NCBI RefSeq assembly: GCF_902713615.1
Contig: NW_024055498.1
Location: forward strand, 1,454,527 to 1,518,526
Direction of reading: 5' to 3'
From: Scyliorhinus canicula
Taxonomy: Eukaryota
Length of the DNA: 64,000 bases
The notes under the pieces were generated by a model, which made no database searches, was not told the origin of the DNA, and saw nothing but the letters and a program-made list of their open reading frames with translations. The position numbers and the translations under genes are program-made. Below are positions 1 to 26,769 of this stretch, one piece after another; the first letter of the stretch is position 1, and each line of letters starts with the position of its first letter.

Positions 1-112
1 GCAGCGCTGTAGGAAATGCTCAGGAAGAACAGGGTGATGAATGTGGAAGCGGTTGTCCAGATGTTGCCGTTATCATCCTCATCGTCTTCAGTCCAGGTGT
101 GGTCTGTGGTAT
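1..112 (-). CDS. IGHM: IgM heavy-chain transmembrane exon TM1 (runs off the window edge)
   Basis: The minus strand has acceptor ...ccccgtAG (113-114), then phase-1 (D)TTDHTWTEDDEDDNGNIWTTASTFITLFFLSISYSAA. This is an acidic spacer plus the conserved Ig membrane (CART) motif WTTASTF..LF.LS..YS. It is in frame with the internal donor of the Cmu4 exon at 3522. Confidence 0.95.
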
Positions 113-288
113 CTACGGGGATAGAGCCGAATAAATATAATCAGATTGTTTGTTAATACACGTTTTGTTTTTAATATTCTCGTTTCATTTTCTCCCGCTG
201 CTAATTCATTCTTTAATATATTTGTCATTGCATATCTACTGTTGAGTTCATGACACTCAGAAATCGATCTCTTTAACTTTTTTCTTCC

Positions 289-445
289 AATTAAGGGGCA
301 AGTTAGCCTGGCCGATCCACCTACCCTGCACATCTTTGGGTTGTCGGGGTGAGACCCACGGGTCACGGGGAAAGTCCACAGGGACACAGACCCAGGAGCG
401 GGATCGTGAGGCAGCAGTGCTAACCATTGCGTCACCGTGCCGCCC
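289..445 (-). mobile_element. HE1/V-SINE-type SINE, partial
   Basis: Reverse complement of the tRNA-like head and the V-SINE core (ccaaagatgtgcagggtaggtggatcggcc). Boundaries are approximate. Confidence 0.8.
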
Positions 446-469
446 TTGCCTGACGTTTGTGTTTGTTCT

Positions 470-1860
470 TTATCATTTGTGTCTGTCTAGATGCGAAATT
501 CGTGTTTCTTTACTCTTCATTTGTGTGTCCCGATGTCTTTATAAGTGTCATTGTGTGTGTCCATGTGTCAATGAGTATTGATCTGTGCATCTGTGTAAAT
601 TTATCTTAAGTCAGTATGTTTTTATGAGTGTTTTATTCTGTGTGTTTGTGTGTTGAAATCTATGTTTATATATTAATGCCTGTGTTAATAAGTTTATACT
701 TCCCTGCCCAGTAATTAAAGTGTTAATGTGTCTTTATACGTTCAACATGCATGTCAGTGTCTTAATGTTTGTGTCTGGATAAGTGCGTTGCGTGTGTGTG
801 TGTTTGTTGATGCGTGTAATTCATCATAGAATCATCATCGGATAATCCTGATTTAGCCGAACGAGGCTATTCGGCCCATTGAGTCTGCACTGACCCTCCC
901 AAAGAGCAGTCTGCCTGGACGCATGCCCCCGCCCTGTCCCCAGAACCTGGTAACCCCACCTAACGTTGTGGGCACTAAGGGGTAATATAGCCTGGCCAAT
1001 CCACCGAACCTGCACATCTTTGGACTGTGGGAGGAAACCGGAGCACCGGAGGAAACAGGAACAGACACCGGAGAACGTGGAAACTCTACACAGACAATCA
1101 CCCAAGGCTGGAATTGAACCCGGGTTTATGGCGCTGTGAGGCAGCAGAGCTATTTATGCGTTGATGGTTATTTATAACTCTCTATTGATGTGTATTGATG
1201 ACTCTATGTGTATTCATATGTGTTCGTGTTAGCGTGTGTACGAGTCGGCTAATATGTGTCTCCGTGTGTCCATAAGTGTGTTAATGTGGATTACTGTCTC
1301 TGAATGGAAATATTTCTGTCATCGTGAAATTCTGCTAATGTATATGTTATTTGTTATATTTGTGTTTAATATTCTTCTGTCAGCCTGCTTGTCTGGTTTT
1401 ATATGTTTGTGTATCTGTGTGGACATGTGGCTGCATGTGTCTGTTTGTGTACATTTGTGTAGCCACTTGTGTGTGTGGATTTGTGTGTCTATGTGTGGAT
1501 GTGCTCGTGTGCCTGTCTCTGTATAAATGTGGGCTTGTTTGTGTTTATGTGCATGTTTGTGAATTTGTGCGCACGTTTGCGTGTGTTTTTGTGTCAAAAT
1601 ATGTGTGATTCGTTGTGCCTGGGTGTATGTTTATGCATGTGTGTCTATGTGTGTGTCCATGTGTGTGTTTGTGTCTACATGTGAGCGTGTGTATGTTTGT
1701 GGGTCTGTGTGCATATATGTGTAGTGTCTGTGTCTGTTTATCTGTCTGTGTATCTGTATCAGCTGCCTGTAGCTTTGCCAGTTGTGGGTATTATTGATAC
1801 CGATGTAGAACATGTTGAACTTTCTGCATATAAATGTGTTTTGTGTGAGTTGCAAGCTGA
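470..1860. repeat. TG-rich low-complexity/degenerate microsatellite tract, interrupted by a SINE at about 825-1150
   Basis: Dense degenerate (TG)n/(TGTC)n sequence. The C/V-rich and H/T-rich ORFs called here are artefacts of this composition. Confidence 0.85.
825..1150 (-). mobile_element. HE1/V-SINE-type SINE
   Basis: Near full-length copy with V-SINE core and CR1-like 3' tail (gggccgaatagcctc...tctatg). The same family recurs at about 5455-5760, 9215-9535, 19950-20260, 38640-38950, 42320-42525, 43575-43920, 46850-47030, 55810-56020 and 61800-62075. Confidence 0.85.
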
Positions 1861-2229
1861 CATCAGGTGACCTAATGCAAAAATACAAGGAGGTGCCTCA
1901 GGAGAGAACAGTGAAACCCCAGCGAGAATTCAATCACCATCTGGATTTGGATTCTGGGGAATCGGTCTCAGCAGACGGATAAGAGGAACAAGGGGGCTAA
2001 AAAAATACATCTTGATCATGATGGTCTTTTGCACCCGTCAGCCAGTAAGCTACATGCCGTCTTGTAATGTCAGTAACTGAGTTCTTAGTCCAGAGAACCG
2101 TTTACTTCCAAACTCCCTGCTTGGGGACTGGGAAGATATTGAGTTAATAATCTCCCTCTCTCTGGTCAGCTCAGCAAATTGCCTTTGGGTTCTCCCTGCT
2201 GGAGGTGGAGATACAGAGAGTTCATTCAT

Positions 2230-3010
2230 CACCTTCCTCCTCTTTTGGTCGGGAAAGTGGAGGTAAAGTGGGTTAGTATTGCCCCTTTGCTCTCTTTGTT
2301 GGGGAAGTGTGGGTCCAGTGGATTAAATAATGGCCATCCCCATCTCATTGTTGGAAGCGGGTGTACAGTGGATTAACTCAGGCCCCCACCGATTCTTTGT
2401 TGGTGAAGTGGGGGCACAGTGTGTTAACTAATGCCCCTCCCCCTCTCTTTGCTGGGGAAGTGGGGGTACAGTGGATTAACTAATGCCCCTCCCCCTCTCT
2501 CTATTGGTGAAGTGGGGGTCCAGTGGATTAACTAATGCCCCTCCCCCTCTCTCTGTTGGGGAAGTGGGGGTACAGTGCGTTAACTAAAGCCCCTCCCCCT
2601 CTCCCTGTTTCGGAATTGGGGGTACAGTGCATGAAGTAATGCCCCTCCCCCTCTTTGTTGTGGCATTGGGTTACGGTGGATTAACTAAAGCCCCTCCCCC
2701 TCTCTCTGTTGGTGAAGTGGGGGTCCAGTGGATTAACTAATGCCCCTGCCCCTCTCTCTATTGGTGAAGTGAGGGTACAGTGGGTTAAATAATCCCCCTC
2801 CCCCTCCTTCTGTTGAGGAAGTAGGGGTACAGTGCATTAACTAATGCCCCTCCCCCTCTCTCTATTGGTGAAGTGGGGGTCCAGTGGATTAACTAATGCC
2901 CCTGCCCCTCTCTATTGGTGAAGTGAGGGTATGGTGCATTAACTAATGCCCCTCCCCCTCTCTCTATTGTGGAAGTGGGGGTACAGTGGATTAACAATTT
3001 CACTTTCCCC
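2230..3010. repeat. About 52-bp minisatellite, about 15 copies
   Basis: Unit TGGATTAACTAATGCCCCTCCCCCTCTCTCTATTGGTGAAGTGGGGGTCCAG repeated in tandem, degenerating toward the left end. Confidence 0.92.
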
Positions 3011-3460
3011 TCTCTTTGACTGGCGATTGTTGGTCCATGATTCTGTGTGACTCTCAATCCAGTTCCCAGTGGGTCTGATCCAGCAACTTAAAGCTGACGT
3101 TAATTTTAAAGGGATGGACAATGAGAGAAGCAGGAACACCGAAATCTAAATGTGATGAGTTTGTTTGTCTGAAATGGGAAATTGTCCGATTTCTCCTCAG
3201 CGGGAGGAAAGTCAATGAAGATATTTTGCTGAATCCTGGAATGAATGAGCTTTGTTCTGTCTCTAACCCAGGGTGCATCTGAGCTGGGAGCACTGGTTGT
3301 ATCAGACTTGGGGCCGAGACCTGTAGAAACCCGGGTCTCATTGAACAGATCTGATATCAGCAAAGTGGAAGCTCCATTAATTAAGCGGATGTGTATTTAA
3401 ATCACAATTGGAGGAAAAAACCTTTATGATTTTTATTTTAGTTCGAAATGCAATAGATTC

Positions 3461-3852
3461 TCATTGACATGAATTAACGGTGTCCATCAGAGCGAGGGAA
3501 ATGTTCACAAAACTGGGTTTACCGCTGGATTTATCAACCGTTCTGTTGATGATCTTCAAGGGGATGGCTTCATGTCCCACCACACAGGAGTAAGAAGCGC
3601 CGCTGGCCCACTCCTCCGCTGCAATGGATAACAGGATGTACATGAAGAAGGAGCTATTGCCGTTCTCCGCCATCACCTCGGTGTTCTTGTAGTTCCCGGG
3701 ATTCACCGGCTTGTCATTGACGGTCCCCTTGACGAAGATCTCTCGGGGGGAGAAACCTCTCACTAAGCAGCTGAGGGAGACGAATCTCTGAGCGGAGACG
3801 TCTTCAGCCGGGGGCAGGAGGACAGAGACGGACGGTTCCCGCGGGTTGGGAT
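3461..3852 (-). CDS. IGHM: IgM Cmu4 exon with secretory tailpiece, orphan (open frame; conserved Trp changed to Gly)
   Basis: Acceptor ttttctgcAG, then (D)[129 protein letters not shown]. Internal G/GTAAA membrane donor at 3522 and AATAAA at 3432-3437. The sequence matches what I recall of shark IgM CH4 and tail. Confidence 0.93.
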
Positions 3853-4146
3853 CTGCAGAAAATGTACATTAAATGTCAATAAAATGGGGAATTCCGGAGA
3901 CAATGGAACCGCGGGTTCGATGTGGGAGAAATGTGTTTTGTGTTGGATTTTAAAGGTTTCCATTTTCCACTTTGGGATCTGTCCGGGTTCCCAGCTCGGA
4001 GCAGAGGTGGACACAATCCTTTTCCCTGAGAATTTACGGATTATGGATTCGAAAGTTTCAGGAAGTGTACAGCAAGGAAACAGGCCATTCGGTCCGCCTG
4101 TTCTGTGCTGGTGTATAAACTCCACACCAGGCTCCTCCCACCTTAC

Positions 4147-5017
4147 CCCAAGAGGATTGGAAAACTGCCAATGTAACACCCTTATTCGAAAGGGAGGGAG
4201 TCAAACACAGGTAACTATAGGCCAGTGACCTTAGTAGCTGAGCATTTAGACAAACAGAGTATAATCAAGCAGGGTCTGCACGGCTTCATGAAGGGTAAAT
4301 CATGCCTGACAAATTTATTGCAATTCTTTGAGGTAATAACGAGAAGAGTAGAGAGAGGGGGACCAGTCGATGTAATCTACATGAATTTCAAAACTGTGTT
4401 TAACAAGTGAATGCACTATTCCCACGGCTGCAGATACAAAAATATAAAGGCAAGTGGTGAGGTTACAGAGGGACAGAGACAGCGTGAGTTACTGAGTAAA
4501 AGCTTGGCAGACGGAACATAATGTTCGTAAATGTTAGGTTAGACACTTCGGGAGGAGGAGGAACATAACGGAATATTATTTAGACGGCGAAAGACTGGAG
4601 AAAGCTGAAGTAACGGGGGAATTGGGGATCCTCGTGCAGAAACCACACAAAGCAAGTTCTGCAGGTAATATGGAGACAAATTGAATTTTGATATTTATTT
4701 AAAAGGGAATAGAATATAAACATGGGGACGTCTGGCTAAAACTATACAAGGCGTTAGTTAGACTACACCTGGTATACTTTGAATAGTTTTGCTGCCCTTA
4801 CCTAAGGAAGACAGATTGGTTTTGAAGGCAGTCCAGAGAAGGATCAGGAGGTCGATCCCGAGTATGGAGGGATTTTCTTATGGGGAGAGGTTAAGTAGGC
4901 TGGCTGGACTTATGGGCGTTTAGAAGAATGAAGGCGGCCTAATCGAGACATGAAAGATTCTCAGCGACCTTCATAGGATAGTCGCTGAGAGCTTGTTTTC
5001 CCTGTGGGAGCGTCTAG
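4147..5017 (+). mobile_element. Decayed CR1 LINE ORF2 (RT) fragment, 3' end missing
   Basis: PEDWKTANVTPL, KQGLHGFMKGKSCLTNLLQFFE and VDVIYM motifs. It ends abruptly at the GxSR motif and abuts a V remnant. Copy at about 18625-19515. Confidence 0.85.
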
Positions 5018-5090
5018 ACAGACACTGCCACCTACTTATGTGCAGTGGACACACAGTGAACTGAAGACCATTCAGCGCCGTACAAACATT
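5018..5090 (+). pseudogene. TRAV: 3' remnant of a TCR alpha/delta-type V segment with intact 23-RSS
   Basis: Reads TDTATYLCAVD, then CACAGTG (5052-5058), a 23-nt spacer and ACAAACATT (5082-5090). The 5' part is absent. Confidence 0.85.
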
Positions 5091-5294
5091 TGCTGGGGTG
5101 ATTCCGAAAGTGCAGTTATCAGAGAGCTGGTCTTTTAACAACTTTCTCCCTTGGATATGCCCCTCAGTCACACAATCAGCGAGATCTGTTCCTGATTTGG
5201 ATTGACTCTTTCATATCAGAAGGGCCAAAGTCCATTTAAATTCAATTATTTTCTGTAACTCACACCAAGACAGCATGTCCTCGGTGAAATGAAA

Positions 5295-5405
5295 GGAAAA
5301 TGAAATGAAAATCGCTTATTGTCACAAGTAGGCTTCAAATGAAGTTACTGTGAAAAGCCCCTAGTCGCCACTTTCCAGCGCCTGTTCGGGGAGGCTGGTA
5401 CGGGA
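5295..5405 (-). mobile_element. Second tRNA-derived SINE family with (TTTCA)n tail, partial
   Basis: Family members carry A box/B box (TAGCACACTGG, GGTTCAATTCC) on the minus strand. Other copies lie at about 13889-14082, 19785-19900, 30887-31058, 37528-37708, 49125-49300, 53718-53905 and 57092-57268. Confidence 0.8.
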
Positions 5406-6390
5406 GGCTGGTGGTTCTTTAAGATAATAGTCATCATGCTGTTCGGTGAGTCAGTATTCAAATGACCTACAGCGCAGAAAGACACCATTCGGTCTATCGA
5501 GTCTGCACTGACCCTCTGAAAGAGCACTCTGCCTAGGCCCACTCCCCGCCTTATCCCCATAACCCCACCTAACCTTTGGACACTAAGGGGCAATTTAGCA
5601 TTGCCAATCCATCTGACCTGCACATCTTTGTGAGAAGATACCGCAGCATCCGGTTGAAACCCAGACGGACACAGGGAGAAAGCGCAACCTCCATACAAAC
5701 AGTCTCCCTTAGCCAGTCCCTGGCACTGTGAGGCAGGAGTGTTAACCACTGTGCCACCGTACTGCCCTAGATTTACCAGGATGTTGCCTAGATTGGAGTC
5801 TTTTAGCGATGAAAAGAGGTTGGTTAGGGCTGGGGATTTGTCCTTACAGCAGAAAAGGCTGAGGGCGGAGAGATTGTGATGTTCAATATTATTAGGGACA
5901 TAGGTAGAGTAGATAGGATGAAAAGATTCATTTAGATGAGCACTTGAAAAGGCGACGGACCAGGTTCTGAAAAACGGGATTAAAATAGAAAGGTTCTTCA
6001 TTACCGGGACAGACATGATGGGCCGAAGGGTCTAGTCTTGTGCTGTTAAATACTATGACTAAGGAATCTGATGCAGGGAAGCTGGCGGTGGCGCCACATG
6101 ACCGCCTCTCCTTTGGTCAAAGAAGGCACAGGAGAGACTTTACTGAGTTGCTCAAATGCAAAGTGGTTCTGTTTATGAAGGTCGCCCGGAGCTGTTTCCA
6201 CTGCAGACCCTTGGATAATACATGGATCGAGGACAAATACAGCCGAGGAAAATTCCATTCATTCATACACCGCGATGTGTTAAACTATAGAAGGCGGAAA
6301 CTAAATAATGGCGGAAGAAGATTCAACGCCAACTTTAAGAAGAAAACTGTGCACAAATGTAACGGGAATTACCGGGGTATGTAGAAAATG

Positions 6391-6780
6391 CCGTTTTTGA
6401 AAGAGGAATAGGGTAACTCTTTCAAAGTGTCTCGGGAAATATAGATCGTGTGGCCTCATCCCTGGCTCTAAGATTCTAGATTCTCGTCCGTCATCTCACT
6501 TCCGATCTATTTCTTCTCAGTGCCTTGCACAGTGAGCAGGTGCAGGATGGTCACGGTTTAGTGAAGATTGAACCGTCGCTATTTCCGCTCCATCAGTTCC
6601 GAGTGCAGCTGAGAGTCACCGCACACTTCACTCAATATTCAGACTGCGGTACAGCTTCCGGTTGCTGCTCTCACTCTGACCCAATTGTCTTACTGGAGAG
6701 ATTGCTGCTTGTGGTTCATTCCTCTCATTGGTCGGATCAGCAGGGCGGTGATCTGTATTTCTGTCTCTAACCGAGCGTTT
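6391..6780 (-). pseudogene. Heavily decayed V-like remnant with degenerate RSS
   Basis: The minus strand reads ...VTLSCT... and ...I*NLRARDEAT..., followed by CACTTTG, 22-23 nt and (T)CAAAAACG. It is paralogous to 9540-9870 and 14950-15360. Copy at about 20886-21276. Confidence 0.5.
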
Positions 6781-6814
6781 CTTTCATTGTAGAATCATAA
6801 ACTAAAGAAGGATT

Positions 6815-7319
6815 ATGAGAAACCATCTCGCTTCGCTCCTCATTGTTTTCTTACTTCTCAGTAAGTATTTCCTTCCCAGTAACACTCCATTCTCTTCCTG
6901 ACTGCTGTAAACGAGATGTTATTGTTGGTAAAATGACAATGATCATGTTATTGATGGTTGTGTTGCTTAATGTGAGGCTGACTCTGATTGTCATTATCGC
7001 TGTTACTTCTGTTAGAATGGAGCCACCAAGACTCCGTGGAGCAAAAGAAACCTGAAATAACGGTTAAAGAGAAAAGTGAAGTTACATTAACCTGCACCTT
7101 GAAAACAGGCGAGCCTAACCCCTATGTGTACTGGTACAGTCAGCAGCCCGGGAAAGCTCCAAGCTACATGCTTCGATTTATTGGACTGGCTGAGCAAAGG
7201 AACACCGACCTCAACGATCGGTTTTCTTCTACATTTGATAAAAAGAACAAGACTACCGAGCTAACGATCAGTAACACAATGATACCCGACTGCGCCGTGT
7301 ATTTCTGTGCCATGCAGCC
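6815..7319 (+). CDS. TRAV: TCR alpha/delta-type V gene segment (leader + V exon), intact
   Basis: Leader 6815-6860 (MRNHLASLLIVFLLL, A/GTAAGT) and V exon 7016-7319 (WSHQDSVEQKKPEITVKEKSEVTLTC...VYWYSQQPGKAP...DCAVYFCAMQP), with C23, W41 and C104 present. RSS follows. Confidence 0.93.
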
Positions 7320-7359
7320 CACACTGCTACAGAGATACAGTGGACCCCGGACAAAAACC
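7320..7359 (+). promoter_or_regulatory. Recombination signal sequence (24-nt spacer variant of the 23-RSS)
   Basis: CACACTG (7320-7326), 24 nt, ACAAAAACC (7351-7359). Confidence 0.88.
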
Positions 7360-7366
7360 CCACACT

Positions 7367-7398
7367 GGCAGTTCCAGCTGCTGCACAGCAGGGGGCGC
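7367..7398 (+). promoter_or_regulatory. Putative CTCF-binding element (upstream motif + core) directly behind the RSS
   Basis: GGCAGTTCC, 6 nt, TGCACAGCAGGGGGCGC. Also present at 21863-21894 and, in the other orientation, at 32960-32991. Confidence 0.65.
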
Positions 7399-7509
7399 GT
7401 CCTCATTGATAGTTCAGTTGCACAGTGAGAGTGACAAAAATTGGGGGAAAAATCACAACACTCAAAATCATCAATAGTGGGGCCCACCTGCACAGTTATA
7501 TCAGTTTAC

Positions 7510-8390
7510 ATAGAACATAGAACAGTACAAGCCCTCCAGGCCACGATGTTGTGCCGACCATTTATCCGATTATAAGATCAACCTAACCTGCTGTCCATGT
7601 GCCTGTCCAAGAATCGCTTAAACGTCCCTAATGACTCTAACTCCACCACCTCCGCTGGCAGTGCATTCCACGCACCCACCACTCTATTTATAAAGAACCT
7701 ACCTCTGACATCTCTCCTCTACCTTCCTCTAATCATCTTAAAATTATGTCCCCTCGTGACAGCCATTTCCGCCCTGGGGAAAAGTCACTGGCTATCCACT
7801 TTATCCATGCCTCTCATCACCTTGTACACCTCTATCAAGCCACCTCTCTTCCTTCTTCGCTCCAGTGAGAACATCCCTAGCTCCCTCAACCTTTCTTCAT
7901 AAGACATGCCCTCCACTCCAGGCAGCCTCCTGGTAAATCGCCTCTGCACCCTCTCCAAAAAAATCCACATCCTTCCTATAATGAGGCAACGAGAACTGGA
8001 CAAGATATGCCAAGTGTGGTCTAACCAGGGTTTTATTAAGCTGCAGCAAAACCTCGCGACTCTTAAACTCATTGCCCATGTTAATGAAAGCCAACGCACC
8101 ATACGCCTTCTTAACAACCCTATCAACCTGCGTGGCAACTATTGAGGGATCTATGTAGGTGGATGCCAAGATCCCTCTGTTCCTCCACACTTCCAAGAAT
8201 CCTGCCTTTCACTCTGTATTCAGCACTCAAATTCGACCTTTCAAAATGAATCATTTCACATTTATCTAGGTTGAACTCCATCTGCCACTTCTCAACCCAG
8301 CTCTGCTTCTTGTCAGTGTCCTGTTGTAACCTGCAACAGCTCTAGACACTATCTACAACTCCACCAAATGTTGTGTCATCGGTAACTCAC
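7510..8390 (-). mobile_element. CR1 LINE 3' fragment
   Basis: ERVQRRFTRRLPG.EGMSYEERL..LG.FSLERRR motif and a (CATAGAA)n-type tail at the left end. Copy at about 22007-22880. Confidence 0.9.
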
Positions 8391-8609
8391 ATTTATAAGA
8401 GATGTAGGATTGATGAATCGATCGGCGAAACTTTAACTCCTGCTACTTGTTCCTATCTTAGTGTACAGACCCACTCATTCAGTAAACTATCAGGTCTCAC
8501 TGAAAGACAATAAATGCAGTAATTTAGATTCATGTAGAGCTTTTCACACAATAAAATGCCCCAACGAGTTTCACAGGAACATAGGGACATATTAGGTCAT
8601 ATGATCAAC

Positions 8610-8760
8610 AACTTGGTCAAAGAGTTTGGTAAGGTGATTGGGGACGACCAAACAGGGTTTGTTAAAGGCAGGCAGCTGACAGCCAACGTGAGAAGATTGC
8701 TTAATGTGATTATGATGCTCCCGACGGACAAGGAGGTGGAGGTAGTGGTGGCTCAAAACC
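8610..8760 (+). mobile_element. Short L1-clade RT fragment
   Basis: DQTGFVKGRQLTANVRRLLNVIM. Copy at about 23105-23255. Confidence 0.75.
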
Positions 8761-9059
8761 CCAGAAGGCAGAACTATGGCTTTCGGACATGTCAAGTTTT
8801 CTGGGTATGGAAAAAAATCAGGTTCACCTTGAGGGGATCTGTATTGGGGTTCGCCCGAAGGTGGCAACCATTCATCGACTTCTTTGCGGGAGAGTCAACG
8901 TCAGCAGGGGGGGGGGGGGGGGGGGGGAGAGATTAGAGTAGAGTAGGAGGGCTAAATAGGCGGATAGTGTCTATGTGAGAGGAGCGGGTATGTGCATTAT
9001 GGTTTGGTTGAAGTGTTGGTTTTCCGTTGATGTTTGCATGTTTCTGTAATCTGACAATT

Positions 9060-9211
9060 ATGCTAAATTTGTGGAAATCATCGCTGGAATATTCCGTCTA
9101 AATCCTGGGAATGCCAAATATTAAAAGGACAAGATTACGGAGCTAACGACCAGTAACACAATGATTTACCACAGCGCCGTGTATTTCTGTGAGCGTCACG
9201 GGAGCACAGTG
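9060..9211 (+). pseudogene. TRAV: Internally deleted V pseudogene; heptamer kept, spacer and nonamer displaced by a SINE
   Basis: KDKITELTTSNTMIYHSAVYFCE closely resembles FR3 of the V at 7016-7319. CACAGTG lies at 9205-9211 and is followed immediately by an HE1-type SINE head. Copy at about 23560-23709. Confidence 0.8.
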
Positions 9212-9539
9212 CGCGGTCCGGTAGCACGGTGGTTCGCGCTGTTGCTTCACAGCTCCTGGGTCCCAGGTTTGATTCCCGGCTTGGTTCACTTTCTGTGCGG
9301 AGTCTGCACGGTCTCCCCGTGTCTGCGTGGGTTTCCTCCGGGTGCTCCGTTTCCACCCACACTCCAAAGATGTGCAGGTTCGGTGGATTGGCCATGCTAA
9401 ATGTTCACAACGGTTGTGTTTGGTTGCGCAGATGGGGTGGAGGTGTGGGCTTGGGTGGGGTGCTCTTCCCGGGGGCCGGTGCGAACTCGATGGGCCGGGT
9501 GGCCTCCTTCTGCACTGTGGATTATGTGAAGTTATGAAA

Positions 9540-12752: not shown

Positions 12753-13417
12753 GTACCGGGCGTTCATGACTTGTGGATTTATCCGAGCGACGGGAGTTTT
12801 ATCGCCCTCACCGTGAGCCGCTCCCCTCTGAAGCAAGTCCGGTATCTGAGTGACTCCCTCGCAGCAGGTAAGAGGTGAGTTTTTGATCGAAAAATCGATT
12901 TTCTACTGAAGCCTAAAGCAAACAAAATGGTCCTACATGATGATAATAATCGTGTTGCTCCGTGAATTGTTGAAATTATTATTGTAAATTTCATGTGTTA
13001 AATACAACAGCAGAGTTCGAAACATTCTCTGTTTTGTTACAGGTACGTACGGGAGACTCAGCGGCCTTGGGCTAATCTGAGTCAACGCGTCTGGAAGGGC
13101 AAACTCTAATTTCCGGCGACATTATCTCAAACACAGAGAGCTGTTATTACCCCCTGCTGAAACGCTGGATTTCCAAGTTCTAATTTACCATCTACATCGC
13201 GGCTGGAGATGATTCTCGTGATTTCGCAAATTGATCCTCTGTTCACCCGCAGAAGAGCGGAAACACCAATATAACTGTCCGATAAATAGACCTGACTGAG
13301 TTCCTGAATCCAGGATCAAACAATTCCCGCAGACAGGAGCAGGAAAGCAGACTTAGTGGGGCTGTACATACTCGCTGAGGTTTTGGTACGGGGCTCCAGC
13401 TGCTCTCTAACGCTGTG

Positions 13418-14131
13418 CCTCACTGCACAGTAATAGACCGCCCCGTCATCCACACTGAGGCCGCTTATATTGAGGTAACCGTTCTGTTTAGACTTGTCAG
13501 CAGCCGCCAGATATCGTCCTGAAACTTTATCTTCCTTCAGAGCAAATACATTGGTAATAATCCAGATTGGTGGCTGTGCCGCTTTCTTATGATACCATTG
13601 CATGTACTGCATACCGGAGTCTGTATATTCACAATGCAGCCTCACCGAACCCCCTTCTGACACGATGTTTGTTACCGGTGATTGAGTTACTGGATCTGCG
13701 CTTAGTCCGCCTGCGAAGGGAGAGAAACGAAACATCAATAATTCTAAACATAATTCATCTACATTTGTTTTTATATGTGTGAGTTTGTGGAAACTCAACT
13801 CTACTCATCATGTGGATATTTTTGATCGTTAATTATATTAAATGTAATTCCAATCTATAACCTGCTAATCTGATTTTATGAACATTATTCAATTCAATTC
13901 AATTTCAATTCAAATCGCTTATTGTCACCAGTAGGCTTCAATGAAGTTACTATAAAAAGCCCCTAGTCGCCACATTCCGCCGCCTGTTCGGGGAGGCTGG
14001 TACGGGAATTGAACCGTGCTGTTGGCCTGTCTTGGTCTGCTTTAAAAGCCAGCGATATAGCCCAGTGTGCTAAACCAGCCCCTTATCCATTACTTACCGT
14101 CCAACAGCGCCGCCATTATTAGCAGCAACAT
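13418..14131 (-). CDS. TRAV: TCR alpha/delta-type V gene segment (leader + V exon), intact
   Basis: Leader 14098-14131 (MLLLIMAALLD, G/GTAAGT) and V exon 13418-13710 (GLSADPVTQSP...VRLHCEYTDSGMQYMQWYHKK...DDGAVYYCAVR). RSS CACAGCG-23-ACCAAAACC at 13379-13417. A SINE sits in the intron (13889-14082). Confidence 0.92.
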
Positions 14132-16496: not shown

Positions 16497-17955
16497 CTCC
16501 TTCCACGCGATAGACTGACCCTTAAAGGGGAATGTATGTGCCCTTGTCTTAAAAACACAATGACATTGACATTCCGCCTAAGAAACGTGAGATACTTGTT
16601 TTCTAAGCATCTTTTGGTCCTCTCTACATTATATGAAAATAACCATATAAGAAATAGCATCGAGCGTAGATCAGTTGACCCTTTGAACCTTCAGTAAGAT
16701 CATAGTTGATCAGATTGCTGCCGTAGGTCCAATTTCCTGCCCTTCAGAAACGGCAACTCGCTTGAAAATAAGATGCTTCCGTGGAGATGAATAGCAACCT
16801 CATTTTTTTTCAATGAGGGACAGTTGAAAATATCCACCTTGCAAAAGTGTCCGTGACGGGAAGTGAGAAAGGACAGTCGCTGAATTCAATTTATCTCATT
16901 ATCCTCCGAACGTTTCGACTGATTTGGAACCATTTGCCAATGTTTCTGACAAACTGCTGGGTCCAATTAACGAATTATCTGCATTCAGTCATGCCTTATT
17001 AATAACTGTAATTTGCAATGAAATATATATCGAAAGCTGTCACTTGATTACAATAATGGTCTATCTACCAATGTTTGCTTTGTGTGTGTGTATGTGTGTG
17101 TACATGTGTGAATGTGTGTGTATGTGTGCATGTGTGTTTATGGTTGTGTCAGAGAATGTATGTGTCTGTTTGAGTATGTGTGTGCTTGTGTGTCTGTTGT
17201 ATATGTGTGTTGTATAAGCGTGCGTGCATGTGTTCTTTATTGCCTTCCTTATAGGCGTATGCGTCTGGAAGTGTTTATTTGTCCGTCTCCACGTCTGTTT
17301 CTCGGCGTCTGCAGTTATGCTTATTTTACCAAAACTTGATGCAAGACAGCGCTACCAGATAATTTGGAAAAGATTTTTCACAGCAAATATTTTCAATGCA
17401 TTTAAATTACTTCAACTAATCAAGCCATTGTGTGCACAGTTTTTAATTCTGATCGTGCGCATAATGTTTGTCACGTTATTAAGTTTGGAATTATTAAAGG
17501 GCCATATCAAACCAGGAATTGCTTCATTTTCAACCTCGTCAAATATTGCAAGAGATGGAATGAGAGAAGCTCCCAGGGGGTGTGATACAGCAACTTAAAT
17601 CTGACATTAATTTTAAAGGGATGGTCAATGAGAGAAGCAGGAACACCGAGATCTAAATGTGATGGGTTTGTTTGTCTGAAATGGGAAATTGCCCAATTTC
17701 TCCTCAGCGAGAAGAAAGTCAATGAAGCTATTTTGCTGAATCCTGTAATGAATGAGTTTTGCTCTGTATCTGAGCTGGGAGGTCTGGTTGTATCAGACCT
17801 GGGGACGAGACCTTTAGAAATCCGGGTCTCATTGAACAGATCCAATATCAGCAAATTGGAAGCTCCATTAATTAAGCGACTGTATATTTAAATCACAATT
17901 GGAGGAAAAAAACTTTATTATTTTTATTTTAGTTCGAAATACAACCAACAGATTC

Positions 17956-18335
17956 TCATTGACATGAATTAACGGTGCCCATCAGAGCGAGGGAAATGTT
18001 CACAAAACTGGGTTTACCGCTGGATTTATCAACCGTTCTGTTGATGATCTTCAAGGGGATGGCTTCATGTCCCACCACACAGCGCGCTGGCCCACTCCTC
18101 CGCTGCATGGATAACAGACTGTACATGAAGAAGGAGCTATTGCCGTTCTCCGCCATCACCTCGGTGTTCTTGTAGTTCCCGGGATTCACCGGCTTGTCAT
18201 TGACGGTCCACTTGACGAAGATCTCTCGGGGGGAGAAACCTCTCACTAAGCAGCTGAGGGAGACGAATCTCTGAGCGGAGACATCTTCAGCCGAGGGCAG
18301 GAGGACAGAGACGGACGGTTCCCGCGGGTTGGGAT
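17956..18335 (-). pseudogene. IGHM: Duplicated orphan IgM Cmu4/secretory exon with compensated frameshift (net -12 nt); no TM exon downstream
   Basis: Acceptor intact and Trp retained (VKWTV). Small deletions totalling 12 nt replace [13 protein letters not shown] with MQRRSGPAR and restore the frame before CVVGHE...[20 protein letters not shown]. Confidence 0.88.
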
Positions 18336-19514
18336 CTGCAGAAAATGTACAATAAATGTCAATAAAATGGGGAATTCCGGTGACAATGGAACCGCGGGTT
18401 AGATGTGGGAGAAATGTATTTTGTGTTGGATTTTAAAGGTTTCCATTTTCCACTTTGGGATCTGTCCGGGTTCCCAGCTCGGAGCAGAGGTGGACTCAAT
18501 CCTTTTCCCTGAGAATTTACGGATATTGGATTCGAAAGTTTCAGAAAGTGTACAGCAGGGAAACAGGCCATTCGGCCCAACTGTTCTGTGCTGGTGTACA
18601 AACACCACACCAGGCTCCTCCCACCTTAGTTCCAAAGGATTTGGGAACTGCCAATGTAACACCTTTATTCAAAAGGGGAGGGGGTCAAAAACAGGTAACT
18701 ATAGGCCAGGGACCTTAGTAGCTGAGCATTTAGACATACAGGATATAATCAAGCAGGGTCTGCACGGTTTCGTGAAGGGTAAGTCATTCCTGACAAATTT
18801 ATTGCCCTTATTTGAGGTGATAACGAGCAGGCTGGAGAAGGGGGAATCAGTAGATGTAATATACATGAATTTCGAAACTGTGTTTAATAAATGAATGTAC
18901 TATTCCCACGGCTGCAGATACAAAAATAGGTAGAAAGGCAAGTGGTGAGGACATAAAGTCTGCAGCGGGACAGAGACAGCTTAAGTTACTGAGTAAAAAC
19001 TTGGCAGATGGAACATAATATTGGAAAATATGAGGTTAGACACTTTGGTTGGGGTAAGAACATAACGGAATATCATTTAGATGTAGAAAGACTGCAGAAA
19101 GTTGAAGTAACGGGCGAATTGGGTGTCCTCCTGCAGAAACCACAAAAAGCAACTTCTGCAGGTAAAATGGAAACAAATTGAATGTTGACATTTATTTCAA
19201 AGGGAATAGAATAGAAACATGGGGAAGTCTGGCTCAAATTATACAAGGCATTAGTTAGACTACACCTGGTATACTTTGAATAGTTTTGCTGCCCTTATCT
19301 AAGGAAGACAGATTGGTTTTGAAGGCAGTCCAGAGAACGATCAGGAGGTCGATCCCGAGTATGGAGGGATTTTCTTATGGGGAGAGGCTAAGTAGGCTGG
19401 CTGGACTTATGGGCGTTTAGAAGAATGAAGGCGGCCTAATCGAGACATGAAAGATTCTCAGGGACCTTCGTAGGATAGTCGCTGAGAGGTTGTTTCCCCT
19501 GTGGGAGCGTTTAG

Positions 19515-19587
19515 ACAGACACTGCCACCTACTTATGTGCAATGGACACACAGTGAACTGAAGACCATTCAGCGCCGTACAAACATT
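19515..19587 (+). pseudogene. TRAV: 3' V remnant with 23-RSS (copy 2)
   Basis: DTATYLCAMD, then CACAGTG (19549-19555), 23 nt and ACAAACATT (19579-19587). Confidence 0.85.
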
Positions 19588-21310
19588 TGCCGGGGTGATT
19601 CCGAAAGTGCAGTTATCAGAGAGCTGGTCTTTTAACAACTTTCTCCCTTGGATATGCCCCTCGGTCACCCAATCAGTGAGATCTGTTCCTGATTTGGGTT
19701 GACTCTTTCATATCAGAAGGGCCGAAGTCCATTTAAATTCAATTATTTTCTGTAACTCACAAGACAGCATGTCCTCCGCGAAATGAAATGAAAATGAAAT
19801 GAAAATCGCTTATTGTCACAAGTAGGCTTCAAATGAAGTTACTGTGAAAAGCCCCTAGTCGCCACATTCCGGCGCCTGTTTGGGGAGGCTGGTACGGGAG
19901 GCTGGTGGTTCTTTAAGATAATAGTCATCATGCTGTTCGGTGAGTCAGTATTCAAAAGACCTACAGTGCAGAAAGACACCATTCGGTCCATCGAGTCTGC
20001 ACTGATCCTCTGAAAGAGCACTCTATCGAGGCCCACTCCCCGCCTTATCCCCATAACCCCACCTAACCGTTGGACACTAAGGGGCAATTTAGCATTGCCA
20101 ATCCATCTGACCTGCACATCTTTGGAGTGTGAGACGATACCTCAGCATCCAGTTGAAACCCAGATGGACACAGGGAGAAAGCGCAACCTCCATACAAACA
20201 GTCTCCCTTAGCCTGTCCCTGGCACTGTGAGGCAGCAGTGTTAACCACTGTGCCACCGTACCTCCCTAGATTTACCAGGATGTTGCCTAGATTGGAGTCT
20301 TTTAGCGATGAAAAGAGGCTGGTTAGGGCTGGGGATTTGTCCTTACAGCTGAAAAGGCTGAGGGCGGAGGGATTGTGATGTTCAATATTATTAGGGACAT
20401 AGGTAGAGTAGATAGGATGAAAAGATTCATTTAGATGAGCACTTGAAAGGCGACGGACCAGGTTCTGAAAAACGGGATTAAAATAGAAAGTTTCTTCATT
20501 ACCGGGACAGACATGATGGGCCGAAGGGTCTAGTCTTGTGCTGTTAAATACTATGACTAAGGAATCTGATGCAGGGAAGCAGGCGGTGGCGCCACATGAC
20601 CGCCTCTCCTTTGGTCAAAGAAGGCACAGGAGAGACTTTACTGAGTTGCTCAAATGCAAAGTGGTTCTGTTTATGAAGGTCGCCCGGAGCTGTTTCCACT
20701 GCAGACCCTTGGATAATACATGGATCGAGGACAAATACAGCCGAGGAAAATTCCATTCATTCATACACTGCGATGTGTTAAACTATAGAAGGCGGAAACT
20801 AAATAATGGCGGAAGAAGATTTAACGCCAACTTTAAGAAGAAAACTGCACAAATGTAACGGGAATTACCGGGGTATGTAGAAAATGCCGTTTTTGGAAGA
20901 GGAATAGGGTAACTCTTTCAAAGTGTCTCGGGAAATATAGATCGTGTTGTCTCATCCCTGGCTCTAAGATTCTAGATTCTCGTCCGTCATCTCACTTCCG
21001 ATCTATTTCTTCTCAGTGACTTGAAAAGTGAGCAGGTGCAGGATGGTCACGGTGTAGTGAAGATTCAACCGCCGCTGTTTCCGCTCCATCAGTTCCGAGT
21101 GCAGCTGAGAGTCACCGCACACTTCACTCAATATTCAGACTGCGGTACAGCTTCCGGTTGCTGCTCTCACTCTGACCCAATTGTCTTGCTGGAGAGATTG
21201 CTGCTTGTGGTTCATTCCTCTCATTGGTCGGATCAGCAGGGCGGTGATCTGTATTTCTGTCTCTAACCGAGCGTTTCTTTCATTGTAGAATAATAAACTA
21301 AAGAAGGATT

Positions 21311-21815
21311 ATGAGAAACCATCTCGCTTCGCTCCTCATTGTTTTCTTACTTCTCAGTAAGTATTTCCTTCCCAGTAGCACTCCATTCTCTTCCTGACTG
21401 CTGTAAACGAGATGTTATTGTTGGTAAAATGACAATGATCATGTTATTGATGGTTGTGTTGCTTAATGTGAGGCTGATTCTGATTGTCATTATCGCTGTT
21501 ACTTCTGTTAGAGTGGAGCCACCAAGAGTTCGTGCAGCAAAAGAAACCTGAAATAACGGTTAAAGAGAAAAGTGAAGTTACATTAACCTGCACCTTGAAA
21601 ACAAGCGATTCTAGCCCTACTGTGTACTGGTACAGTCAGCAGCCCGGGAAAGCTCCAAGCTACATGCTTCGATTTATTGGACTGGCTGAGCAAAGGAACA
21701 CCGACCTCAACGATCGGTTTTCTTCTACATTTGATAAAAAGAACAAGACTACCGAGCTAACGATCAGTAACACAATGATACCCGACTGCGCCGTGTATTT
21801 CTGTGCCATGCAGCC
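21311..21815 (+). CDS. TRAV: TCR alpha/delta-type V gene segment, intact (paralogue of 6815-7319)
   Basis: Leader 21311-21356 and V exon 21512-21815 (WSHQEFVQQKKPE...TCTLKTSDSSPTVYWY...YFCAMQP). RSS CACACTG (21816-21822)-24-AGAAAAACC (21847-21855). Confidence 0.93.
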
Positions 21816-23731
21816 CACACTGCTACAGAGATACAGTGGACCCCGTAGAAAAACCCCACACTGGCAGTTCCAGCTACTGCACAGCAGGGGGCGCGCCCTC
21901 ATTGATAGTTCAGTTGCACAGTGAGAGTGACAAAAATTGGAAGAAAAATCACAACACTCAAAATCATCAATAGTGGCGCCCGCCTGCACAGTTATACCAG
22001 TTTACATAGAACATAGAACAGTACAGGCCCTCCAGGCCACGATATTGTGCCGACCATTTATCCTATTATAAGATCAACCTAACCTGCTGTCCATGTGCCT
22101 GTCCAAGAATCGCTTAAACGTCCCTAATGACTCTAACCACCACCTCCGCTGGCAGTGCATTCCACGCACCCACCACTCTATTTATAAAGAACCTACCTCT
22201 GACATCTCTCCTCTACCTTCCTCTAATCATCTTAAAATTATGTCCCCTTGTGACAGCCATTTCCGCCCTGGGGAAAAGTCTCTGGCTATCCACTTTATCC
22301 ATGCTTCTCATCACCTTGTGCAGCTCTATCAAGCCACCTCTCTTCCTTCTTCGCTCCAGTGAGAACATCCGTAGCTCCCTCAACCTTTCTTCATAAGACA
22401 TGCCCTCCACTCCAGGCAGCCTCCTGGTAAATCGCCTCTGCACCCTCTCCAAAAAAATCCACATCCTTCCTATAATGAGGCAACGAGAACTGGACAAGAT
22501 ATGCCAAGTGTGGTCTAACCAGGGTTTTATTAAGCTGCAGCAAAACCTCGCGACTCTTAAACTCAGTGCCCATGTTAATGAAAGCCAACGCACCATACGC
22601 CTTCTTAACAACCCTATCAACCTGCGTGGCAACTATTGAGGGATCTATGTACGTGGATGCCAAGATCCCTCTGTTCCTCCACATTTCCAAGAATCCTGCC
22701 TTTCACTCTGTATTCAGCACTCAAATTCGACCTTTCAAAATGAATCATTTCACATTTATCTAGGTTGAACTCCATCTGCCACTTCTCAGCCCAACTCTGC
22801 TTCTTGTCAGTGTCCTGTTGTAACCTGCAACAGCCCTAGACACTATCTACAACTCCACCAAATGTTGTGTCATCGGTAACTCGCATTTATAAGAGATGTA
22901 GGATTGATGAATCGATCTGCGAAACTTTAACTCCTGCTACTTGTTCCTATCTTAGTGTACAGACCCACTCATTCAGTAAACTATCAGGTCTCACTGAACG
23001 ACAATAAATGCAGCAATGTATATTCATGTAGAGCTTTTCACACAATAAAATGCCCCAACGAGTTTCACAGGAACATAGGGACATATTAAGTCATATGATC
23101 AACAACTTGGTCAAAGAGTTTGGTAAGGTGATTGGGGACGACCAAACAGGGTTTGTTAAAGGCAGGCAGCTGACAGCCAAAGTGAGAAGATTGCTTAATG
23201 TGATTATGATGCTCCCGGCGGACAAGGAGGTGGAGGTCGTGGTGGCTCAAAACCCCAGAAGGCCGGGCTATGGCTTTCGGACATGTCAAGTTTTCTGGGT
23301 ATGGAAAAAATCAGGTTCGCCTTGAGGGGATCTGTATTGGGGTTCGCCCGAAGGTGGCAACCATTCATCGACTTCTTCGCGGGAGAGCGAGCGTCAGCAG
23401 GGGGACTGGGGGAGAGGGGGAGGAGAGAGATTAGAGTAGAGTAGGAGGACTAAATAGGCGGGTAGTGTCTGTGGGAGAGGAAATGGTATGTGCATTATGG
23501 TTTGGTTGAAGTGTTGGTTTTCCGTTGATGTTTGCATGTTTCTGTAATCTGACAATTATGCTAAATTTGCGGAAATCATCGCTGGAATATTCCGTCTAAA
23601 TCCTGGGAATGCCAAATATTAAAAGGACAAGATTACGGAGCTAACGACCAGTAACACGATGATTTACCACAGCGCCCTGTATTTCTGTGAGCATCACGGG
23701 AGCACAGTGAGCGGTACGGTAGCACGGGTAT

Positions 23732-24201: not shown

Positions 24202-25973
24202 GGTATGTCGCGCTGTTGCTTCACAGCTCCTGGGTCCCAGGTTTGATTCCCGGCTTGGTTCACTGTCTGTGCGGAGTCTGCACGGTCTCCCCGCGTCTGC
24301 GTGGGTTTCCTCCGGGTGCTCCGTTTCCGCCCACACTCCAAAGATGTGCAGGTTCGGTGGATTGGCCATGCTGAATGTTCACAACGATTGTGTTTGGTTG
24401 CGCAGATGGGGTGGAGGTGTGGGCTTGGGTGGGGTGCTCTTTCCGGGGGCCGGTGCGAACTCGATGGGCCGGGTGGCCTGCTTCTGCACTGTGGATTATG
24501 TGAATCTATGAAATAGGGGCAGGGAGGCTAAATTCAATCTGGTCCCTTCTCGCCGGAGGGAAGTGCCTTCCCTCTATATTGTTCTCAGTGACTTGAGCAG
24601 TGAGCAAGTGCAGGTTACCCCTCGCTACTTCCGCTCCCTCACTTGCGACAGGAGCTGATAGCCGCCGTACACTTTTTTTTTTATCAGTTTAGAGTCTGTG
24701 GTGTCCGCGGTCACAGTTTCCGTTTGTTGATCTCGCTCTAACAAAATTGTGATATTCTAGACATTGTTGTCGCTGCTGCATTCCTCTCATTGGTTTGAGC
24801 AACAGTGCAGTGGCACCTGGATCTGTATTTCTGCTCTGACAGATAATTGCCTGGGAGCAACTAAGTCAGGAACTGTCACGGGGAACCGCCTCTCAGCTCT
24901 CCTCAACATCTCACCTCACGGGAAAAAACCATTCTCCCCTCCGGGCAGCCAGCACGGTTCATGTTGCGTCCGATTGGAGAGAATCTGCACAGCAGCACAG
25001 GTAGAAGTGATCTCAATGTGACTCACATACAGATAAATCCCTGTACATAAATATATACTGTTAGCGATCGAGGCACAGAACGGTTGAGCTGTCTGACCAC
25101 AGAAAGAGGAAGGATCTACAATAGTGTAGACAGCTCAATGTAGCAGCAGGAGCGGGGTACTGACGATCAGACCAGGCCCTGTTCAGCTCAGCAGAGACGG
25201 CCAATCCTCTGATCGGCAGAGGCGCTTGGGAGAAAGACAACGTCAGTAATATTGCTCCCCGTGACAGTGCAGCAAATCTGTAAGGACGATACAACTACAA
25301 GGCGGTGGCGGTACCGGGCGTTCATGACTTGTGGATTTATCCGAGCGACGGGAGTTTTATAGCCCTCACCGTGAGCCGCCTCCCTCTGAAGCAAGTCCGG
25401 TATCTGAGTGACTCCCTCGCAGCAGGTAAGGTGAGTTTTTGATCGAAAAATCGATTTTCTACTGAAGCCTAAAGCAAACAAAATGGTCCCGCATGATGAT
25501 AATAATCGTGTTGCTCCGTGAATTGTTGAAATTATTATTGTAAATTTCATGTGTTAAATACAACAGCAGAGTTCGAAACATTCTCTGTTTTGTTACAGGT
25601 ACGTACGGGAGACTCAGCGGCCTTGGGCTAATCTGAGTCAACGCGTCTGGAAGGGCAAACTCTAATTTCCGGCGACATTATCTCAAACACAGAGAGCTGT
25701 TATTACCCCCTGCTGGTACGCTGGATTTCCAAGTTCTAATTTACCATCTACATCGCGGCTGGAGATGATTCTCGTGATTTCGCAAATTGCTCCTCTATTC
25801 ACCCGCAGAAGAGCGGAGACACCAATATAACTGTCTGATAAATAGACCTGACTGAGTTCGTGAATCCAGGATCAAACAATTCCCGCGGACAAGGACAGGG
25901 AAGCAGACTTAGTGGGGCTGTACATGCTCGCTGAGGTTTTTGTACGGTGCTCTAGCTGCTCTCTAACGCTGTG

Positions 25974-26769
25974 CCTCATTGCACAGTAATAGACCGCCCC
26001 GTCATCCACACTGAGGCCGCTTATATTGAGGTAACCGTTCTGTTTAGACTTGTCAGCAGCCGCCAGATATCGTCCTGAAACTGCATCATCCTTCAGATCT
26101 AATAACTTGCTAATAATCCAGATTGGTGGCTGTGCCGCTTTCTTGTGATACCATTGCATGTAATCCATACTGGAGTCTGTATATTCACAATCCAGCCGCA
26201 CCGAATCCCCTTCTGACACGGTGTTTGTCACCGGTGATTGAGTTACTGGATCTGCGCTTAGTCCGCCTGTAAAAGGAGAGAAACGAATCATCAATAATTC
26301 TAAACATCATCGGCAGAAAGGGAAAAACGGTTTGGTTGCTAGACTGATAGCGCGGAGGGGGGGGGGGGGGAGGGAGAGTGGGGGGGTGCGCGCGGGGGAG
26401 GGCGTGGGGAGGTTTTTCCAGGGGGGACTTGTGGTGTTATAATTTAAAATGTAATAGGGGTAAATGTTTGTATCGAAAAATTTCAATAAAAATTATTTAT
26501 AAAAAAAAAAATAATTCTAAACATAATTCATCTATATTTGTTTGTATATGTGTGAGTTTGTGGAAACTCAACTCTACTCATCATGTGGATATTTTTGATC
26601 GTTAATTATATTAAATGTAATTCCAATCTATAACCTGCTAATATGATTTTATGAACATTATCCATTACTTACCGTCCAACAGCGCCGCCATTATTAGCAG
26701 AGTGAGACTTCTTACTGTGCTCACCCCAGTCCAACGCCGGCATCTCCACATCATTATTAGCAGAAACAT
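25974..26769 (-). CDS. TRAV: TCR alpha/delta-type V gene segment with an in-frame extended leader (paralogue of 13418-14131)
   Basis: Leader 26673-26769 (97 nt, open) and V exon 25974-26266 (...VRLDCEYTDSSMDYMQWY...AVYYCAMR). RSS CACAGCG-23-ACAAAAACC at 25935-25973. Confidence 0.88.
26308..26509 (+). mobile_element. Short poly-A-tailed retro-insertion (L1-type 3' end) in the V intron, copy-2-specific
   Basis: 15-bp TSD AATAATTCTAAACAT at 26293-26307 and 26510-26524. The empty site is at about 13737-13751. Confidence 0.85.
26701..26751 (-). mobile_element. 51-bp Penelope-like terminal fragment inside a V leader exon
   Basis: Reverse complement of the element end at 28280-28330. 12-bp TSD CATTATTAGCAG at 26689-26700 and 26752-26763. 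Confidence 0.9.

Follow-up and report, generated by a model that had tools for sequence, protein, structure and literature searches.

A broken IgM minicluster, probably a decaying pseudogene, fused to a TCR alpha/delta-type V gene tip in Scyliorhinus canicula

What is the 3' end of an IgM gene doing next to a fragment of a T-cell receptor (TCR)-type V gene in the genome of the catshark Scyliorhinus canicula? The locus lies at the start of a 64,000-nucleotide stretch of contig NW_024055498.1 (positions 1,454,527 to 1,518,526), hereinafter the window, and the initial annotation left two answers open: an IgM cluster edge that a deletion had eroded, or an Ig constant region and membrane module captured by a TCR locus. 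Interspersion as such is part of the known elasmobranch antigen-receptor complex, in which IgH clusters are linked to TCR alpha/delta and TCR alpha/delta-type V exons lie between IgH clusters, as already published for sharks, the catshark included (Flajnik et al. 2025, PMC12227049). In line with that part of the published account, the window's contig and many others show an alternation of IgM clusters with TCR alpha-like V genes. The oddity of the V array reported in the initial annotation was overstated, given that the V family involved co-occurs with IgM clusters on many contigs.

RESULTS

An IgM 3' end and its missing upstream part

The IgM portion of the locus consists of the following features (window coordinates):

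1-112, minus strand: IgM TM1 exon, with the acceptor AG at 113-114 and about 36 nt more outside the window start
113-3460, minus strand: Cmu4-TM1 intron and 3'UTR, with homology to the corresponding intron of intact clusters
3432-3437, minus strand: AATAAA poly-A signal of the secretory form, 24 nt past the stop codon
3461-3853, minus strand: Cmu4 exon, open, with the secretory tail and stop codon, encoding 130 aa
3854-5015, minus strand: 3' remainder of the Cmu3-Cmu4 intron, with homology to about 37 clusters

The orphan Cmu4 matches the C1-set domain (Pfam, E = 4e-18) and is identical to Cmu4 of an intact cluster on C39 in 127 of 130 residues. It carries S15P, W43G and S73I; the Cys pair of the domain is kept, and the invariant Trp is replaced by Gly (W43G). 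The splicing and processing signals noted at first reading are all in place: the splice acceptor (CTGCAG/AT), the internal membrane donor (CG/GTAAAC, GT at 3522-3521), the poly-A signal, and the penultimate Cys of the secretory tailpiece, which also has an N-glycosylation site. TM1, estimated initially to lie 3.4 kb downstream, is found at 3.35 kb; a tblastn search with the C39 TM1 recovered the complete exon at C106:1454490-1454639, with 50 of 50 aa identical. The intervening intron includes TG-rich simple sequence (~1200-1800) and a tandem array with a unit of ~51 bp (~2230-3015). Homology to the C39 cluster spans 12.4 kb, through Cmu4 and TM1 and past them into the native 3' flank, where a LINE insertion of ~3 kb is located downstream of the orphan TM1.

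The remnant is therefore colinear with the cartilaginous-fish IgM minicluster (VH-D1-D2-JH-Cmu1-4-TM1-TM2) in Cmu4, tail, membrane donor, poly-A signal, TM1, both flanking introns and the 3' flank, with 86-90% DNA identity to the intact clusters of this genome and 97-98% in the exon. Unlike these clusters, it lacks VH, D, JH, Cmu1-3 and ~530 bp of the Cmu3-Cmu4 intron, besides carrying W43G. Searches with the C39 exons as queries (tblastn and blastn) revealed no Cmu1-3, VH, D-J region or JH motif in the window, in agreement with the initial annotation, and the same searches were equally negative in the 50 kb left flank (C106:1404527-1454526). In a functional minicluster, VH, D, JH and Cmu1-3 would be expected no more than about 20 kb upstream and in matching orientation; none was found there, so that the locus is not an ordinary cluster with Cmu1-3 in order upstream, one of the two findings named at the outset as capable of overturning the proposal. 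The closest Cmu1-3 belong to a complete IgM cluster 121 kb off on the opposite strand (the cluster sits 105-130 kb to the right).

The surviving native intron measures 1.16 kb. Within it, at ~4072-5000, lies a degraded LINE fragment that encodes reverse transcriptase sequence on the plus strand. The initial annotation had described about 200 bp of intron followed by a truncated CR1 element. The LINE fragment exists, but it is also present inside the Cmu3-Cmu4 intron of about 37 intact clusters and is accordingly a normal part of the intron rather than foreign sequence. In the C39 cluster, which is intact, the position corresponding to the breakpoint falls inside this old LINE fragment, ~530 bp past Cmu3.

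The junction with a V gene

At the far end of the intron, the IgM homology gives way to a V-gene end on the plus strand:

5015/5016, no strand: breakpoint between IgM intron and V gene, a sharp end of homology
5016-5051, plus strand: TCR alpha/delta-type V end, the last 36 nt (..DTATYLCAVD)
5052-5090, plus strand: intact RSS23 of the V tip, with heptamer CACAGTG (5052-5058), 23-nt spacer (5059-5081) and nonamer ACAAACATT (5082-5090)

All 37 scored IgM loci lose homology to the window at 5015-5017, that is, within 2 nt. On the other side, the V tip with its RSS aligns over 96 bp with intact V genes elsewhere at 87% identity, and matches to ~40 intact V genes cover its tail, RSS and 3' flank; the native 3' flank of the V gene runs to at least 5462 and is interrupted by a SINE at ~5297-5411. 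The "beheaded" V gene of the initial annotation is thus real. Intact paralogs (L029-L031) match the V-set domain (Pfam, E = 9e-12), and their top single-domain PDB matches are almost all TCR alpha chains. PDB searches with two V genes from the window gave mostly multi-domain scFv matches, which are weakly diagnostic, and the single protein homolog retrieved for the V family was an unnamed one of 95 aa. A profile search with PF09291 (TCR alpha constant domain) gave no match in the genome, with the control genomes equally silent. As judged from these sequence matches, the junction partner is a TCR alpha/delta-type V gene, of which only the FR3 tip and the RSS23 are retained in the window.

The junction shows microhomology of at most 2 nt (CT), possibly with 1 inserted nt, and the RSS heptamer is 36 nt away. 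RAG-mediated germline rearrangement was rejected as the source of the junction, since the break falls 36 nt inside the V coding end rather than at the heptamer border of the RSS, which is intact. No CACAGTG/CACTGTG heptamer was detected in the ~100 nt 5' of the breakpoint in the aligned intact intron. We likewise rejected the possibility that an IgM fragment had inserted into a V gene, as the V head is not found to the left of the IgM 3' flank.

Three diverged copies of the junction

Only three loci span the junction: the one described above (copy 1), a tandem copy in the window and contig C105. The tandem copy arose within a 14.5-kb tandem duplication and includes the following features:

17568-23727, no strand: tandem duplicate of 3061-9229, with 94.9% identity and the junction at ~19512/19513
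17959-18336, minus strand: second orphan Cmu4 (copy 2), with 1-nt and 11-nt deletions, and D124G in the tail

Copy 2 lacks TM1 and most of the Cmu4-TM1 intron, and the two deletions scramble ~10 codons ahead of the second Cys of its Cmu4. Contig C105 carries a one-unit version, which resembles copy 1 on the left side and copy 2 on the right side; the invariant C1-set Trp is retained in both copy 2 and the C105 copy. The three copies of the junction differ by 2-8%, on both sides of it.

An assembly artifact, that is, a chimeric joining of an IgM cluster with a V-gene region, might be suspected in such a repeat-rich, multi-copy region, all the more so because the junction is unbridged in public Logan contigs from low-coverage runs: no contig from two DNA runs (one of them under a second species label) bridges 5015/5016, in a data set where single-copy sequence is barely represented. 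However, the window contains zero N, and the identical junction was assembled three times in diverged copies, a recurrence that is not expected of a chimera, so that an artifact is hardly credible. Because it is shared by three copies with 2-8% divergence, the junction is, on sequence comparison, real and old rather than a misassembly.

Origin of the remnant

Taken with a probability of roughly 0.82, our reading is that the locus is a non-functional remnant of an IgM minicluster: a structural break within the Cmu3-Cmu4 intron left its 3' part fused to the FR3 tip of a V gene that stood head to head with the cluster. We infer this earlier head-to-head arrangement of an IgM minicluster and a TCR alpha/delta-type V gene for the present site; elsewhere in the genome, as judged from match coordinates, V and IgM genes are arranged head to head on C328 and C284. 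The simplest event would be a single end-joining deletion that took VH-D-D-J-Cmu1-3, the intergenic DNA and all of the V gene except 36 nt, and left the 3' part, namely, the remainder of the intron, Cmu4, the TM exons and the native 3' flank. The broken locus would have been copied later, giving rise to the 14.5-kb tandem duplication and the C105 unit, with subsequent drift of the copies. The first of the two answers originally proposed, a cluster edge eroded by deletion, fits the sharp break at 5015/5016, the native 3' flank, the failure to find a reciprocal junction and the decay described below.

We infer a deletion in preference to a more complex rearrangement. In the case of an inversion, or a rearrangement more complex still, the missing 5' half, with VH-D-D-J and perhaps also Cmu1-3, would survive elsewhere, attached to the V head. 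A possible candidate is a V-D-D-J cassette without visible C exons on the opposite strand, 72-82 kb to the right (C106:1526958-1536783). However, this cassette does not include Cmu1-3. It shares 98% identity with the 5' part of the complete cluster next to it and stops precisely at a 13-N gap, and may therefore represent a recent duplication or an effect of the assembly. Furthermore, no V head of the broken family was found within 204 kb, and none of the 40 scored loci has a Cmu3 intron that ends at the reciprocal point, which together argues against a simple inversion. We consider such an origin unlikely.

Decay, evolutionary rates and expression

Copy 1 and the C105 copy still have an open Cmu4 with all splice and poly-A signals. 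These intact features in two of the three copies, along with the TM1 sequence identical to that of an intact cluster in 50 of 50 aa and an exon that evolves more slowly than its flanks, could be taken to indicate a functional module, whose Cmu4-TM would serve the V genes around it or other IgM clusters (switch-type recombination between clusters being one conceivable route) or act as a gene conversion donor. Several observations speak against this possibility. Upstream of the orphan Cmu4, there is no leader, J or donor in the same orientation, and the nearest element is the inverted V tip. Copy 1 no longer has the invariant Trp, and copy 2 carries deletions. The dN/dS ratio is ~0.5 in the orphan Cmu4 compared with ~0.06 in intact clusters, and the ratio of nonsynonymous to synonymous changes is 7:4 in the orphans compared with 1:5 in intact clusters. 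All seven raw RNA reads at three copy-1 diagnostic sites carry the canonical letters (very low depth, from one run with the tissue unlabeled), so that there is no orphan-specific read among the seven. Hence, a functional module appears very improbable, and the second of the original answers, capture by the TCR locus, is unsupported.

Given W43G in copy 1, the deletions in copy 2, the dN/dS of ~0.5 and the exclusively canonical RNA reads, the IgM remnant is probably non-functional, a decaying pseudogene. We see here neither a new receptor architecture nor an Ig/TCR hybrid.

The slow evolution of the orphan exon calls for an explanation of its own. Since the formation of the junction, the exon has accumulated 10 changes in 381 sites compared with 140 in 1,532 sites of its own flanks, a rate of ~0.3x. 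Residual selection could account for this difference, but the N:S ratio looks neutral and agrees better with gene conversion by intact clusters or with a mutation rate that is low locally. Moreover, ~230 bp of intron next to the orphan Cmu4 are conserved as much as the exon, which favors homogenization over selection at the protein level, again counting against a functional module. The slow change of the exon itself hints at sequence homogenization between the clusters. The low exon rate relative to the flanks would also be explained if the orphan Cmu4-TM were kept similar through a role in IgM, either as a gene conversion partner or as an acceptor that gives a Cmu4/TM end to VDJ-Cmu1-3 of another cluster; we regard such a role, too, as highly improbable.

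Relation to known Ig pseudogenes and cluster linkage

Partial or truncated copies of Ig genes, known as pseudogenes or orphons, occur in vertebrate genomes. The remnant resembles these in being a partial Ig gene without the parts required for expression that was duplicated later and is gathering damaging changes. Two features set it apart: it has stayed in its native region instead of moving to another chromosome, and the partner at its breakpoint is a TCR-type V gene. The part of the elasmobranch account that bears on this point describes linkage of whole clusters and mentions no broken cluster fused to a V fragment (PMC12227049).

The precisely mapped breakpoint, present in three copies, documents the loss of a cluster in this region, apparently by end-joining and not at an RSS. 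For genome annotation, the locus is of practical value: TCR-type V genes are interspersed among the dozens of IgM clusters in shark genomes, where broken pieces of this kind can be taken for Ig/TCR chimeras in gene models.

An isolated 3' part of an IgM gene

The window (C106:1454527-1518526), which comes from a 4.22-Gb shark assembly and contains no Ns, carries on its minus strand the 3' part of an IgM gene. As the initial annotation had it, Cmu4 is open, with its acceptor, membrane donor and poly-A signal, and is followed downstream by TM1. The exon encodes 130 aa and a stop, begins with DPNPREPS, matches the Pfam C1-set domain (E = 4e-18), and is identical at 127 of 130 residues to Cmu4 of the intact IgM cluster mapped here on contig C39. 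The acceptor (CTGCAG/AT), the internal membrane donor (CG/GTAAAC) and the AATAAA are visible in the nucleotide alignment. TM1 crosses the window start, is full-length in the genome and matches C39 TM1 at 50 of 50 aa.

Features of the window, the reference IgM cluster and the V gene family
3461-3853 (-), Cmu4 of copy 1
3432-3437, AATAAA
112 (-), first base of TM1
~4072-5000 (+), decayed LINE reverse transcriptase fragment
5016-5090 (+), V tip (..DTATYLCAVD) and RSS23
5052-5058, heptamer CACAGTG, followed by a 23-nt spacer
5082-5090, nonamer ACAAACATT
6988-7320 and 21484-21815 (+), V gene, one per duplicated unit
13319-13804 and 25875-26307 (-), V gene, one per duplicated unit
C39: VH 62634; JH ~64193; Cmu1 75799; Cmu2 76300; Cmu3 77245-77583; Cmu4 end 79721; TM1 ~83160
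L029, C328:22122-25389, V family locus
L030, C460:750108-753377, V family locus
L031, C348:82500-85767, V family locus

The reported lack of Cmu1-3, JH and D was confirmed in the window and extended to the 50 kb on its left: no VH or Cmu1-3 (tblastn), D-J region (blastn, both with C39 queries) or JH (motif search) was found there, the sole matches being Cmu4 cross-hits and unrelated V genes (26-39% identity). In the 3' direction the locus stays homologous to C39 through TM1, over 12.4 kb, broken by a ~3-kb insertion with a LINE reverse transcriptase ORF. Past this IgM 3' flank, the next 40 kb on the left (C106:1415919-1445830) are filled with LINE reverse transcriptase ORFs and several long ORFs of the C2H2 zinc-finger type; neither V nor C exons of Ig or TCR were detected in them.

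A sharp break in the Cmu3-Cmu4 intron

Window positions 1-6000 match about 25 IgM clusters in the genome at 86-90% identity, and every match ends at 5015-5017, the counterpart of C39 position 78106, 530 bp 3' of Cmu3. With a 200-bp probe centered on the junction, 37 of the 40 scored loci ended at probe positions 100-102 (window 5015-5017); the three that span it are copy 1, window ~19413-19612 and C105:1531696-1531895. The LINE fragment, previously described as a truncated CR1 after about 200 bp of intron, is common to the Cmu3-Cmu4 introns of intact clusters, so 1.16 kb of native intron remains and the break merely cuts the fragment's 3' end.

The ~230 bp of intron directly 5' of Cmu4 (3854-4084 and equivalents) are 94-99% identical, about the exon level, whether intact clusters are compared with one another or with the orphans; farther upstream, the intron is 81-95% identical.

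The sequence beyond the break was correctly described as a beheaded TCR V. About 40 loci elsewhere match the tip, the RSS and 450 bp or more of the 3' flank; they hold intact V genes, each made up of a leader and a ~91-aa V exon (...WYRQYPDQ...TDTATYLCAVE). Pfam assigns the family to V-set, and nearly all of its top single-domain matches in the PDB are TCR alpha chains. Many family copies share contigs with IgM clusters, 50-250 kb apart and in varied orientation. Flajnik et al. (PMC12227049) describe linkage of IgH clusters to TCR alpha/delta and place TCR alpha/delta-type V exons among the IgH clusters, so that in this region one would expect to see an IgM fragment next to V genes of this kind.

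The junction is real, precisely mapped and old. The same junction occurs in three diverged copies, which rules out a chimeric assembly. Segment 3061-9229 is duplicated at 17568-23727 (94.9% identity), within a tandem duplication (3061-30241) whose ~14.5-kb unit carries at least two V genes in addition to the orphan Cmu4 and the junction. Contig C105 (1510000-1539999) is colinear with the window and has one unit only, its left part resembling copy 1 (97.6%) and its right part the copy-2 unit (97.4-98.5%), as unequal recombination would be expected to leave it. In a tree based on shared derived substitutions, copy 1 groups with the C105 copy, to the exclusion of copy 2.

Origin of the junction

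With microhomology of at most 2 nt, possibly one added base and a position 36 nt from the heptamer, the junction bears the signature of end-joining rather than that of RAG cleavage. A single deletion between an IgM cluster and a V gene arranged head to head would account for all observations, and such pairs, judged from match coordinates, are present on contigs C328 and C284. C106:1404527-1608526 contains no V head belonging to the broken family, and none of the 40 scored loci has a Cmu3 intron ending at the reciprocal point.

A V-D-D-J cassette at C106:1526958-1536783 (+), with a JH motif (..YWGQGTMVTVT) at 1534341, cannot be accepted as the missing 5' half, because it matches the 5' part (1554000-1563889) of the neighboring complete cluster at 98% identity and stops exactly at a 13-N gap (1536784), which may account for its apparent lack of constant exons. 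That cluster (C106:1559900-1584064 (+), 105-130 kb to the right, counted from the window start) has VH, Cmu1-4 and TM1, and its Cmu4 is identical to that of C39 (130/130). The JH-Cmu1 intron of the C39 cluster holds a ~6.5-kb simple repeat (67853-74347), which gives long open 'SLTHTH' stretches in more than one reading frame.

Signs of decay in the orphan Cmu4

Compared with a consensus built from four intact clusters, copy 1 carries S15P, W43G and S73I, W43 being the invariant C1-set Trp; the C105 copy carries N3K and S128L; and copy 2 shows S89R and D124G besides deletions of 1 nt and 11 nt. Changes in the three orphans total 7 non-synonymous and 4 synonymous (dN/dS ~0.5), against 1 and 5 in the intact clusters (dN/dS ~0.06); these are small numbers. 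The orphan Cmu4 locus is probably a truncated pseudogene remnant, not a new Ig/TCR module. Of the two origins initially proposed, the eroded edge of an IgM cluster agrees with the sharp break, the native 3' flank and these signs of decay; capture by the TCR locus is disfavored by W43G, the deletions and the lack of a leader, J or donor upstream of Cmu4 in the same orientation.

After the junction arose, the exon changed ~0.3 times as fast as its flanks (10/381 versus 140/1532 sites). The high-identity tract covers the exon and ~230 bp of neighboring intron and is also seen between intact clusters; from this sequence pattern, we read the slow exon as likely reflecting homogenization (gene conversion) or a mutation rate that is low locally; selection on the protein is the less likely reading. 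Transcription of the orphan was assessed through its diagnostic variants: all seven of seven reads from an oligo-dT RNA run carry the canonical letters at three copy-1 diagnostic sites, and RNA-type contigs agree, which argues weakly against orphan expression.
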